Sequence record: PQ898399.1
Length of the DNA stretch: 64,000 nucleotides
Strand: one strand, 5' to 3'
Under the pieces are notes generated by a model that made no database searches, was not told the origin of the DNA, and was given only the letters and a program-made list of their open reading frames with translations. Shown one piece after another: positions 62,244 through 64,000 of this stretch (within the stretch, counting starts at the first letter, position 1; every line of letters starts with the position of its first letter). The translations under genes were made by a program, and so were the position numbers.

Positions 62244-62331
62244 GGGGAGTTAATTCCGTAGAGGTAGCGGTGCAGACTGTAAATCTGTTGTCATTGCGAC
62301 TCGGGTGGTTCGACTCCATCACTCCCCACCA
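62244..62331 (+). tRNA. tRNA-Tyr(GTA)
   Basis: Acceptor GGGGAGT/ACTCCCC, loop CT-GTA-AA, long variable arm, encoded CCA. Confidence 0.95.
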
Positions 62332-62337
62332 AATTCA

Positions 62338-62413
62338 GGGAATATAGCTCAGTTGGTAGAGCAAACGACCGATAATCGTTAGGTCACTGGTTCGAGTCCA
62401 GTTATTCCCACCA
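62338..62413 (+). tRNA. tRNA-Ile(GAT) with C33
   Basis: Acceptor GGGAATA/TATTCCC, stem AACGA/TCGTT, loop CC-GAT-AA, CCA. Confidence 0.93.
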
Positions 62414-62449
62414 ATTTGCTTAAAGATATTTTTGATATTATAAATATCT
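62414..62449 (+). promoter_or_regulatory. Overlapping middle and late promoters inside the tRNA cluster
   Basis: ATTTGCTTA 62414-62422, TATTAT 62436-62441, TATAAATA 62439-62446; inverted repeat AGATATTT/AAATATCT. Confidence 0.8.
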
Positions 62450-62451
62450 AC

Positions 62452-62528
62452 AGGACACTAGCTCAGCTGGTTAGAGCACCGGACTTTTAATCCGGGTGTC
62501 GAAAGTTCGAATCTTTCGTGTCCTACCA
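62452..62528 (+). tRNA. tRNA-Lys(TTT)
   Basis: AGGACAC/GTGTCCT, CCGGA-CTTTTAA-TCCGG, CCA. Confidence 0.95.
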
Positions 62529-62529
62529 A

Positions 62530-62604
62530 TCTCCGTTCGTCTATCGGTTAGGACGCCGGCCTTTCACGTCGGAAAGAAGAGTTCAATTCTCTTACGGAGA
62601 ACCA
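62530..62604 (+). tRNA. tRNA-Glu(TTC)
   Basis: TCTCCGT/ACGGAGA, loop CT-TTC-AC, CCA. Confidence 0.94.
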
Positions 62605-62609
62605 AATTT

Positions 62610-62694
62610 GGGTCGTTGGCTGAGAGGGTAAGCGGCGGACTGTTAATCCGTGTCAGAAATGACTAGGCAGGTTCGATACCTGCACGACCCGCCA
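62610..62694 (+). tRNA. tRNA-Asn(GTT) with long variable arm
   Basis: GGGTCGT/ACGACCC, loop CT-GTT-AA, extra arm GTCA-GAAA-TGAC, CCA. Confidence 0.93.
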
Positions 62695-62696
62695 AA

Positions 62697-62800
62697 TATA
62701 GAAATCAGAAGACGTTCTGATAAGTCGTCGGCACTTTAATCCCTGTCTGTGAGTTCCCTCAACGATAACTACACAGTCCAAATTAAATACGGCGCCGAAA
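62697..62800 (+). ncRNA. rnaD: Probable homologue of T4 stable RNA D (species II)
   Basis: AGAAA-hairpin-TAAGTCGTCGG 5' part and ACGGCG 3' part match my recollection of T4 rnaD; helices 62704-62721, 62724-28/62789-93, 62747-55/62767-76. Confidence 0.6.
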
Positions 62801-62801
62801 G

Positions 62802-62934
62802 TTTACTTTCGGAGTATATTGATGAAGTTATTGCGTTAATGAAGATTATATCTGTGCACGGGTATATGAGAGCCAATAACGCCTATTCAGCTTTCCGGAA
62901 GGCTTGAGGGTAATCCCATACTCACGAAAGTAAA
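62802..62934 (+). ncRNA. Unassigned structured RNA X1
   Basis: 16-bp closing helix with one bulge plus internal helices; directly 5' of tRNA-Asp. Confidence 0.55.
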
Positions 62935-62937
62935 TTT

Positions 62938-63013
62938 GGACCTATAGTTTCAGCGGTGAAAATACTCGCCTGTCACGCGAGAGTCACGGGTTCGAATCCC
63001 GTTAGGTCCGCCA
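62938..63013 (+). tRNA. tRNA-Asp(GTC)
   Basis: GGACCTA/TAGGTCC, CTCGC-CTGTCAC-GCGAG, CCA. Confidence 0.95.
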
Positions 63014-63025
63014 AATACGAGGCAG

Positions 63026-63160
63026 TTCTTGAAGATGAGTTTGAGTCCTATAAGATAATGCCGAGGACGAAGCTGTTTGTTCCCACGGGATAAGCTCTAT
63101 ATTCGGAAGATTATATCTTTAGCGTGTTCTACATCAAGCTACTTGTTAGTACTTCAAGAA
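63026..63160 (+). ncRNA. Unassigned structured RNA X2
   Basis: TTCTTGAAG/CTTCAAGAA closing helix, AGTTTGA/TCAAGCT, GTCC/GGAC, AGCT/AGCT. Confidence 0.55.
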
Positions 63161-63170
63161 TCCGGATAGA

Positions 63171-63247
63171 TGCGGGTTAACTTCAGTTGGTAGAATGACG
63201 GGTTCATATCCCGTTACGCGATGGTTCGAGTCCATCACCCGCCTCCA
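63171..63247 (+). tRNA. tRNA-Met(CAT), initiator-like
   Basis: T1:C72 mismatch, three G:C pairs in the anticodon stem (ACGGG/CCCGT), loop TT-CAT-AT, CCA. Confidence 0.85.
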
Positions 63248-63253
63248 AATAAT

Positions 63254-63329
63254 TGGGGTATAGCCAAGTTGGTAAGGCAGTAGATTTTGATTCTACGATT
63301 CCCTGGTTCGAGTCCAGGTACCCCAGCCA
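63254..63329 (+). tRNA. tRNA-Gln(TTG)
   Basis: TGGGGTA/TACCCCA, loop TT-TTG-AT, CCA. Confidence 0.95.
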
Positions 63330-63333
63330 AATT

Positions 63334-63430
63334 AGAGTGTAACGGTAAGTCCATTTATCGGAAGTGCGAACCGCGCGATAGCTGCCAATGCATAAATGGT
63401 TACTCCGTACAAGACTGGGACTCTCACTCT
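63334..63430 (+). ncRNA. Unassigned structured RNA X3
   Basis: AGAGTG/CACTCT, GTAA/TTAC, CCATTTAT/ATAAATGG. Confidence 0.5.
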
Positions 63431-63451
63431 TCTTAAATAAGCTGTCACATC

Positions 63452-63540
63452 AATATTTACTTGACGCGTCTACAAGGGTTGAACTGATCACTCTTCTCTC
63501 AATTTCGTGTGAAGGCATCATGATTGCTGGAGTGAATATT
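63452..63540 (+). ncRNA. Possible structured RNA X4
   Basis: AATATTTACTT/GAGTGAATATT closing helix just 5' of tRNA-His. Confidence 0.35.
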
Positions 63541-63543
63541 AAT

Positions 63544-63619
63544 GTGGCCGTAGTTCAGTTGGTAGAACTCGAGATTGTGATTCTCGTAGCCATGGGTTCA
63601 ACTCCCATCGGTCACCCCA
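63544..63619 (+). tRNA. tRNA-His(GTG)
   Basis: GTGGCCG/CGGTCAC, C73, loop TT-GTG-AT, CCA. Confidence 0.94.
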
Positions 63620-63623
63620 ATTC

Positions 63624-63715
63624 GGAAGCGTGGTAGAGCGGCTTATTACACCGGTCTTGAAAACCGGAGGCCGTAGTGATACGGTCCGTGGGTTCGAATC
63701 CCACCGCTTCCTCCA
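63624..63715 (+). tRNA. tRNA-Ser(TGA)
   Basis: GGAAGCG/CGCTTCC, loop CT-TGA-AA, long variable arm, CCA. Confidence 0.95.
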
Positions 63716-63719
63716 TTTT

Positions 63720-63793
63720 AGGTCTCTCGTATAGTGGTATTATCCTGAGCTCCAACCTCAGTGACGTGGGTTCGATTCCTACGGGGCCTGCCA
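63720..63793 (+). tRNA. tRNA-Trp(CCA)
   Basis: AGGTCTC/GGGGCCT, CTGAG-CTCCAAC-CTCAG, CCA. Confidence 0.92.
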
Positions 63794-63797
63794 AATT

Positions 63798-63940
63798 ATC
63801 GGTTCGAGGAATTGCCTAAGCCGTAAGCCGAGTAGCGTTTTTGACGGAACGTTCGGATATGGTAGAGGCATGGCCTTCATAAGATAAATTGTGACGTCAA
63901 TCGCAATTTAACCTGGTTCGAATCCAGGCGTTCCGTACAA
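63798..63940 (+). ncRNA. rnaC: Homologue of T4 stable RNA C (species I)
   Basis: GCCGTAAGCCGAGTAGCGTTTTTGACGGAACGTTCGGATATGG core as I recall from T4 rnaC; tRNA-like 3' end with T-arm CCTGG-TTCGAAT-CCAGG. Confidence 0.8.
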
Positions 63941-63943
63941 ATT

Positions 63944-64000
63944 GCATCCATCGTATAGCGGCTATTATGACTGGCTTCCACCCAGTAGATGAGAGTTCGA
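63944..64000 (+). tRNA. tRNA-Gly(TCC), truncated by window end
   Basis: ACTGG-CTTCCAC-CCAGT anticodon arm; T-loop begins GTTCGA. Confidence 0.88.

Follow-up and report, generated by a model that had tools for sequence, protein, structure and literature searches.

X1, a conserved structured RNA family in the tRNA gene clusters of T4-like phages of Enterobacterales

The window analyzed here, a stretch of 64,000 nucleotides from sequence record PQ898399.1, contains a member of a previously undescribed family of conserved structured non-coding RNAs in T4-like phages of Enterobacterales, which we confirmed and term X1. The whole conserved unit of 133 nt (62802–62934, + strand) was delimited with a covariance model, and its boundaries agreed across all homologs. 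We define the family by the elements P1, P1.1, P2, K-loop, P3, and P4 together with an invariant AAGAU...UGAGAG core, located inside a T4-like tRNA cluster; 18 non-identical members were recognized, and the window copy scored 141–149 bits. The original prediction had proposed a multi-branch structured RNA, and this was borne out by the same fold in the homologs, by compensatory covariation, and by a strand-specific excess of G·U pairs. As to function, we favor, at a probability of roughly 0.55, a stable trans-acting RNA whose kink-turn-like loop and palindromic loops would bind a protein or another copy of X1.

Genomic context and distribution of X1

X1 lies in a tRNA gene cluster on the + strand that occupies the last 1.8 kb of the window (62244–64000), in which ARAGORN called 11 tRNAs and Rfam called 12. 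BLAST placed this cluster among T4-like phages of the genus Karamvirus, with 100% identity to Enterobacter phages SonariX, id4496, and AS6, 99.7% identity to PG7, and 83% identity to CC31. Every gene around X1 is on the + strand. A scan of that strand found no promoter-like site inside the cluster and two weak terminator-like matches, which fall in tRNA-Lys and in X2 (see below) and neither in nor beside X1. The most natural reading is therefore that the cluster forms a single polycistronic unit, as it does in T4.

The spacer between tRNA-Asn and tRNA-Asp is 243 nt long and consists of two separable modules, since BLAST matches span either query positions 1–116 or 106–242. The upstream module (62697–62801, + strand), identified by local alignment, is a homolog of T4 rnaD, and the downstream module is X1. 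Over the 5' part of the upstream module 34 of 43 positions were identical to T4 rnaD, and the ACGGCGC 3' motif is common to both; the part homologous to T4 rnaD (71053–71171 in T4) is 62700–62745, upstream of X1. The rnaD-like module has compensatory changes of its own (CUGUG/CACAG in the window phage versus AUAUG/CAUAU in CC31), and a stretch related to it (query 25–101) is also present in the rV5-like Escherichia phages UPEC06 and W70. On the other side of X1, tRNA-Asp(GTC) (62938–63013, + strand) was called by both ARAGORN and Rfam. Its start at 62938 agrees with the earlier claim that X1 ends 3 nt before this tRNA, the three nucleotides being TTT.

Neither program called a tRNA in 62695–62937, while the flanking tRNAs were detected. 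The original prediction could not assign X1 to a known family, and neither could we: Rfam 15, searched at the gathering threshold and, over 62690–63560, with cmscan at E ≤ 10, returned only tRNAs plus chance plastid-model matches on the tRNAs, and we found no paper or Rfam family describing X1.

Two further non-tRNA RNAs are encoded downstream on the + strand. A full-length homolog of T4 rnaC (species 1 RNA) is located at 63799–63937 (117 of 135 positions identical); ARAGORN miscalled its tRNA-like 3' half as a tRNA-Met at 63844–63938. A conserved non-tRNA RNA that we term X2 (63014–63170) has a long closing helix (CAGUUCUUGAAG.../...CUUCAAGAAUC) and was also found in Marfa, ATCCa, PM2, and L153. 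One X2 hairpin has GA on either side, which may be a G·A motif like that of X1. An exact 13-mer, GAAGATTATATCT, occurs in both X1 (62841–62853) and X2 (63106–63118), though the covariance model did not recognize X2 as a homolog of X1; because the segment is missing from the X2 of Marfa, we regard the 13-mer in X2 as a lineage-specific insertion or duplication. A model search with filters off found no X1 paralog in the other spacers of the cluster.

We gathered relatives of X1 with BLAST searches that took successive variants as queries, with pattern scans, and with the covariance model. These searches yielded relatives in roughly 200 of 50,697 phage records, from T4-like phages of Enterobacter, Klebsiella, and related bacteria. 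They fall into nine sequence types of X1a and a shorter, syntenic subtype, X1b, with two versions. The X1a types comprise those of PG7 and the window, CC31, the Marfa-type Klebsiella phages, a Marfa-like copy in the metagenome phage L153, Escherichia phage EcS1, Serratia phage LC53, Erwinia phages Virsaitis27 and FBB1, and Pectobacterium phages PM2 and POP12. X1b was found in 137 Klebsiella and Raoultella phage records. In the one X1b record inspected, that of phage ATCCa (Jiaodavirus), the order tRNA-Asn, rnaD-like module, X1b, tRNA-Asp, X2, and tRNA-Met puts X1b in the syntenic place; the tRNA-Asp after X1b carries no annotation in this record. In L153 (2899–3154), X1a and X1b stand in tandem, 5 nt apart, followed by X2 and tRNA-Met, and the two subtypes are thus able to coexist.

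Model searches of whole records found one copy of X1 each in Marfa, EcS1, PM2, and ATCCa, and no match over the whole T4 genome. In a pattern scan of the viral collection, true matches were confined to T4-like phages. Pattern scanning of metagenomes gave at least 120 matches, and among the matches listed only L057 and L153 were real, the rest being due to chance. At least 120 matches were also obtained in bacterial genomes; the 100 that were scored with model R2 were all chance matches, and no host-encoded copy was found.

Covariation, fold, and invariant core

The 133-nt sequence folded at −39.3 kcal/mol (z = −3.65), and none of 200 shuffled sequences was as stable. Ten other homologs, folded singly, each adopted the same architecture with z-scores from −4.0 to −5.1. 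In a MAFFT alignment, RNAalifold predicted 36 pairs, 22 of which had compensatory double changes. In the alignment made with model R2 (18 sequences), 96.2% of 787 cells could pair and double changes occurred at 28 of 45 pairs; when the partners were slid, only 5–11 pairs had double changes, and none of 500 shuffles reached the observed values, for all five measures. Because the R2 alignment is fitted to its model, the MAFFT result serves as an independent check. Within the helices of X1, 77 cells were G·U versus one A·C, and the covariance-model score fell to 13.5 bits on the − strand. The G·U excess and the difference in score between strands therefore indicate selection on the + strand transcript, which is the tRNA strand.

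These data bear on two readings in which X1 is not an RNA at all. It could be a DNA-level element, either a miniature mobile element or a cluster of palindromes for recombination or protein binding. Terminal inverted repeats of 16 bp, a direct repeat of the 3' arm just upstream (GAAAGT..), hairpin tips that are perfect DNA palindromes, and a place within the cluster that varies among phages would all suit such an element. However, X1 is present as a single copy in each of four phage genomes and is not associated with a transposase; its arms covary instead of preserving a transposase-binding sequence; the upstream repeat copies the arm itself and is no flanking duplication; and compensatory internal helices with a 77:1 ratio of G·U over A·C make sense only for a + strand transcript. 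A DNA element is thus highly improbable.

X1 could also encode a small protein, whether from a 52-codon GTG ORF (62749–62907) or from the CDSs annotated in Marfa, AS6, CW742, and the Roth phages. The ORF exists in the window, several GenBank records carry a hypothetical protein here, and conservation of this ORF at the protein level, with no covariation, was what the original prediction had set against a structured RNA. We found that the ORF is not kept open and that its frame is not preserved in relatives: it contains stops in EcS1, LC53, and Virsaitis27, indels in CC31 and in one metagenome copy shift the conserved stretch into another frame, and no reading frame is open across all homologs. 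The start of the ORF, with its 5' third, falls in the separate rnaD-like module, which does not precede X1 in EcS1, Virsaitis27, and FBB1, and the substitutions in X1 are paired across helices and lack a codon pattern. We consider a small protein hardly credible. CDSs annotated as hypothetical proteins over rnaD-like or X1 RNAs occur in Marfa (HWC54_gp276), AS6, CW742, the Roth phages, and others; those over X1 in the four named are probably gene-caller artefacts.

The fold consists of a 16-bp closing helix P1, a short helix P1.1, and a three-way junction with two arms. P2 and P3, with an invariant GA-rich internal loop between them, make up one arm, and a two-part P4 forms the other. Position n of X1 corresponds to window position 62801+n. 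The 5' strand of P1 (62802–62817, TTTACTTTCG+GAGTAT, 10 bp + 6 bp) pairs with 62918–62934 (ATACTC-A-CGAAAGTAAA), at positions 1–10/124–133 and 11–16/117–122, with A123 (A62924) bulged. This is the pairing that had been claimed, and covariation supports it: 98.3% of cells were paired and 8 of 16 pairs had double compensatory changes. The bulged A is present in types with a CG...CG stem and missing from EcS1-type stems. On top of P1, P1.1 pairs GAU at 62821–62823 (positions 20–22) with AUC at 62913–62915 (positions 112–114). Alignment columns 22–128 were paired in 18 of 18 sequences, with four double changes, and columns 23–127 in 16 of 18; in these two central pairs G-C is exchanged for A-U or U·G and A-U for C-G or G-C. 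P1.1 was also seen independently when single sequences were folded. A noisy search for extra covarying contacts or pseudoknots gave nothing convincing beyond P1.1.

The 5' strand of P2 (62827–62837) comprises 7 bp, a bulged C62834, and 3 bp, and pairs with 62871–62880 (positions 26–32/73–79 and 34–36/70–72), with double changes in 7 of 10 pairs and 95.5% of cells paired. The predicted GTTATTG/CAATAAC helix was supported by covariation as well. P3 (62847–62866) is a hairpin of 8 bp (positions 46–53/58–65) with a UGCA tetraloop at 62855–62858 and double changes in 7 of 8 pairs. The ATATCTG/CGGGTAT hairpin proposed for it does covary; its 8-bp version had an impossible 2-nt loop, and the actual hairpin has 7–8 bp closed by UGCA. 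The P4 arm (62882–62910) has an outer CCU/GGG, a middle UCA/UGA, and an inner GCUUU/AAGGC helix (positions 81–83/107–109, 86–88/104–106, and 89–93/98–102) and a CCGG loop at 62895–62898; 6 of 11 pairs had double changes, 95% of cells were paired, and the outer pair was C-G versus U-A at 8:8. From the AGCTTTC/GAAGGCT helix first proposed here, AGCTTT/AAGGCT covaries, and the 7-bp version, again with an impossible 2-nt loop, gives way to 5 bp with a CCGG loop and an outer extension. A GGG-TAAT-CCC hairpin (62908–62910/62915–62917), one of five helices listed in the original prediction, occurs in this lineage only and was discarded: across the family the GGG pairs with CCU at 62882–62884, and C62915 pairs with G62821 in P1.1. 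Mimicry of a T-loop or of a tRNA by P4 was ruled out by its sequence.

The stems of X1 vary freely, and about 13 nucleotides flanking P3 (7 + 6 unpaired) are invariant in both X1a and X1b. The invariant set is U36, A37, A38, A41, A42, G43, A44, and U45 on one side and U66, G67, A68, G69, A70, and G71 on the other; A37, A38, A41, A42, G43, A44, and U45 were invariant in all 16–18 sequences, X1b included. The internal loop is formed by a long strand (62838–62846, positions 37–45, AAUGAAGAU), which is the candidate bulged strand of a kink-turn, and a short invariant strand, UGAG (62867–62870, positions 66–69).

Tentatively, this loop resembles a kink-turn. The hallmark of kink-turns is tandem G·A plus U·U adjoining a purine bulge (PMC8191799), and the U·U can be compared with that of box C/D kink-turns (PMC5689011). 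In the layout that we propose, Y39-G69 would be the -1b:-1n pair, R40-A41-A42 the bulge, G43·A68 and A44·G67 the sheared pairs, followed by U45·U66, and P3 would be the non-canonical helix. G43/A44 and G67/A68 are invariant and placed as tandem trans sugar-Hoogsteen G·A and A·G pairs beside a bulge would require, a match at the level of sequence. Y39 is able to pair with G69 in all X1a, which leaves an RAA bulge, and an AA bulge (A37-A38) separates this pair from P2. Like kink-turns of the Kt-7 or box C/D type, X1 would thus have a purine bulge, tandem G·A and A·G, and a U·U between a Watson-Crick helix and a hairpin helix, with U45·U66 presumably comparable to the box C/D U·U. Unlike them, X1 requires a further AA bulge within its C helix, the loop spacing is longer by one nucleotide in X1b, and the phages lack an L7Ae-type protein: no member of this family (PF01248) was found in five phage genomes, nor in E. 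coli-type hosts according to a control list. U:U at 3b:3n is not among the combinations listed as folding well in metal ions alone (PMC8191799), which hints at a protein partner for the loop.

The hairpin loops show a second regularity. The P3 loop was UGCA in 16 of 16 X1a sequences, even in POP12, where the closing pair has changed from G-C to A-U, and GUAC in X1b. The P4 loops were CCGG, CGCG (POP12), an 8-nt loop (Virsaitis27), and UCG (X1b). Four of the six loop types are therefore self-complementary tetranucleotides (UGCA, GUAC, CCGG, and CGCG), each with a chance of 1 in 16, which suggests loop-loop self-association of X1. The palindromic loops could also be a by-product of the birth of hairpins by inverted duplication.

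Upstream hairpin, processing, and expression

Immediately upstream, CCGAAAG (62795–62801) can pair across a UUUA loop with CUUUCGG (62806–62812) to form an alternative hairpin (62795–62812, + strand) that is incompatible with the outer half of P1. The 8–12 nt before X1 were complementary to the first 6–10 nt of the P1 5' strand in 11 of 13 contexts, the exceptions being POP12 (5 bp only) and the second L153 copy (none). The hairpin did not depend on whether the upstream neighbor was an rnaD-like RNA, tRNA-Lys, or tRNA-Asn, and it was kept by compensatory and wobble changes, such as CCGAAAG/CUUUCGG versus UUGAAAG/CUUUCAG. Compared with shuffled upstream sequences, it outdid 95% or more of them in 9 of the 13 contexts. 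The minimum-energy fold of the full spacer kept P1 and added 3 bp, so that the resulting 19-bp helix ended exactly at tRNA-Asp +1. We infer that the upstream hairpin briefly protects the P1 5' strand during transcription, is the site of the 5' cut, or both.

A tRNA followed X1 in 8 of 13 contexts, at a distance of 3–5 nt in seven and 11 nt in POP12. The proposal that RNase P sets the 3' end of X1 is accordingly plausible in the window phage. RNase P is not the general 3' route, because in Marfa, PM2, and the metagenome phage L153 X1 is followed by another non-tRNA RNA.

The RNA data were assembled Logan contigs from wastewater RNA libraries, in which the ends of contigs are not the ends of molecules. 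Contigs from these libraries covered X1, at a depth equal to that over coding DNA, and for this reason they are no proof of X1 transcription. One wastewater metatranscriptome contained a contig of 137 nt that corresponded in its entirety to 62801–62937, and a contig from a second run also stopped at 62937, the predicted RNase P site; both are suggestive only. Ends at 62801 and 62937 would give a P1 closed by G·U with a 2-nt 3' overhang. One further metatranscriptome contig joined the end of tRNA-Asn (62688) to the end of tRNA-Asp (63008), with the rnaD-like module, X1, and the greater part of tRNA-Asp left out. This contig probably came from a related phage that lacks these modules or from an assembly chimera via the similar tRNA ends.

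Our preferred reading, that X1 is a stable trans-acting RNA, would involve the following steps. X1 would be made within the polycistronic transcript of the tRNA cluster, an origin suggested by the lack of a promoter or terminator inside the cluster, and tRNA-processing enzymes would cut it from the precursor. In the window phage, RNase P cleavage at tRNA-Asp +1 would leave the 3' end ...AAAUUU, and a second endonuclease would cut in or beside the loop of the small upstream hairpin. That hairpin would hold the P1 5' strand during transcription and be displaced once the 3' strand is made. The excised X1 would then accumulate as a stable trans-acting RNA, like the species 1 and 2 RNAs of T4. Its active part would consist of the invariant kink-turn-like loop and the self-complementary hairpin loops, likewise invariant, so that the X1 core may offer a host or phage protein a place to dock, pair with a second X1 copy, or both.

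The main rival is that X1 acts in cis as a spacer, which ensures correct folding and cutting of the tRNA-cluster precursor and is then degraded with no function of its own. Such a spacer would insulate the neighboring tRNAs from misfolding and present sites for RNase P, E, or III. In keeping with this, X1 lies between processed RNAs in every phage, usually 3–5 nt from a tRNA 5' end, P1 extends in the precursor to the +1 of tRNA-Asp, and the conserved upstream alternative hairpin resembles a folding or processing device. However, a three-way junction, about 13 unpaired nucleotides that are invariant in the two subtypes, and an invariant tetraloop are more than a processing signal should require. 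X1 is not tuned to one tRNA, since its downstream neighbor may be tRNA-Asp, Asn, or Ser or another ncRNA, and in T4 and most T4-like phages the clusters are processed although X1 is missing. We regard the spacer reading as possible, though unlikely.

Some cut beside the upstream hairpin must make the 5' end of X1, and X1 might make it itself as a new small self-cleaving ribozyme, which would also free the 3' end of the upstream RNA. The compact junction fold with its invariant unpaired nucleotides is of the right kind, and UGAUGA and GAAA strings in the window recall the core of the hammerhead. These strings vary among types, UGAUGA being replaced by GAUUCA, CAAUUA, or CGCCUC, and a hammerhead built from UGAUGA...GAAA was ruled out on this basis. 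There was no match to an Rfam ribozyme model at E ≤ 10 (hammerhead, HDV-like, twister, pistol, and hatchet), and the noisy covariation search gave no convincing pseudoknot or other extra contact beyond P1.1. A self-cleaving ribozyme is very unlikely.

Relation to known RNAs and significance

That the tRNA cluster of T4 encodes two stable RNAs other than tRNAs, RNAC and RNAD, has been clear since the 1970s; both accumulate late in infection, and their role is unknown (PMC3014915, PMC9697503), as is also stated elsewhere (PMC12685909). Like rnaC (species 1) and rnaD (species 2), X1 is a non-tRNA structured RNA in the size range of 119–139 nt, encoded on the tRNA strand inside a T4-type tRNA cluster. 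Unlike them, it has no sequence or structural homology to either, and it lacks the tRNA-like T-arm of rnaC; the rnaC homolog of the window is a separate gene, as described above, and the likeness between X1 and T4 rnaD does not go beyond one shared 11-mer, ATTGCGTTAAT (62830–62840 in X1). The 11-mer has a chance expectation of roughly 0.004 and lies in different surrounding structures, and it may have arisen by chance or be left over from an old recombination event. X1 is a third, independent RNA class that is missing from T4.

Bacterial Y RNAs (YrlA), some of which are encoded by phages, are about 100–130 nt long, with their 5' and 3' ends in a long bulged helix and a branched module opposite. 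X1 is similar in length, in its long bulged end helix, and in its branched far end, but it lacks a T/D module and a recognizable Ro-binding helix. With no match to an Rfam Y-RNA model at E ≤ 10, the identification of X1 as a Y RNA was rejected. ROOL and GOLLD are structured RNAs of phages and prophages whose function is unknown, which are encoded near tRNA islands and assemble via kissing loops (PMC12286853). X1 shares the location near tRNA islands, and its self-complementary loops could allow it to assemble likewise. In contrast to X1, which has no Rfam match, ROOL and GOLLD are 4–6 times larger and belong to other phage groups.

X1 is thus a new family of a known kind of RNA, the stable RNAs other than tRNAs that phage tRNA clusters encode. 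Its functional core is sharply conserved, about 200 carriers have been sequenced, and genetics, structure probing, and pull-downs are straightforward because the carriers CC31 and EcS1 infect laboratory E. coli. Its description corrects spurious hypothetical protein entries in many phage records, including therapeutic Klebsiella and Enterobacter candidates, and its covariance model could be deposited as a new RNA family. The non-tRNA RNAs of T4-type clusters now appear as a wider, modular phenomenon, in which relatives of T4 carry at least one further unrelated class.

Beyond the docking of a protein or a second copy, it is conceivable, if rather improbable, that X1 represents a new class of phage effector RNA. 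A host or phage protein would be recruited by its kink-turn-like platform, or its two self-complementary loops would drive RNA-only dimers or oligomers, and X1 would thereby alter tRNA processing, translation, or tRNA-targeting host defense in Enterobacterales other than E. coli. If this were true, X1 would offer a first way into the function of the non-tRNA RNAs in T4-type clusters, a puzzle now 50 years old.
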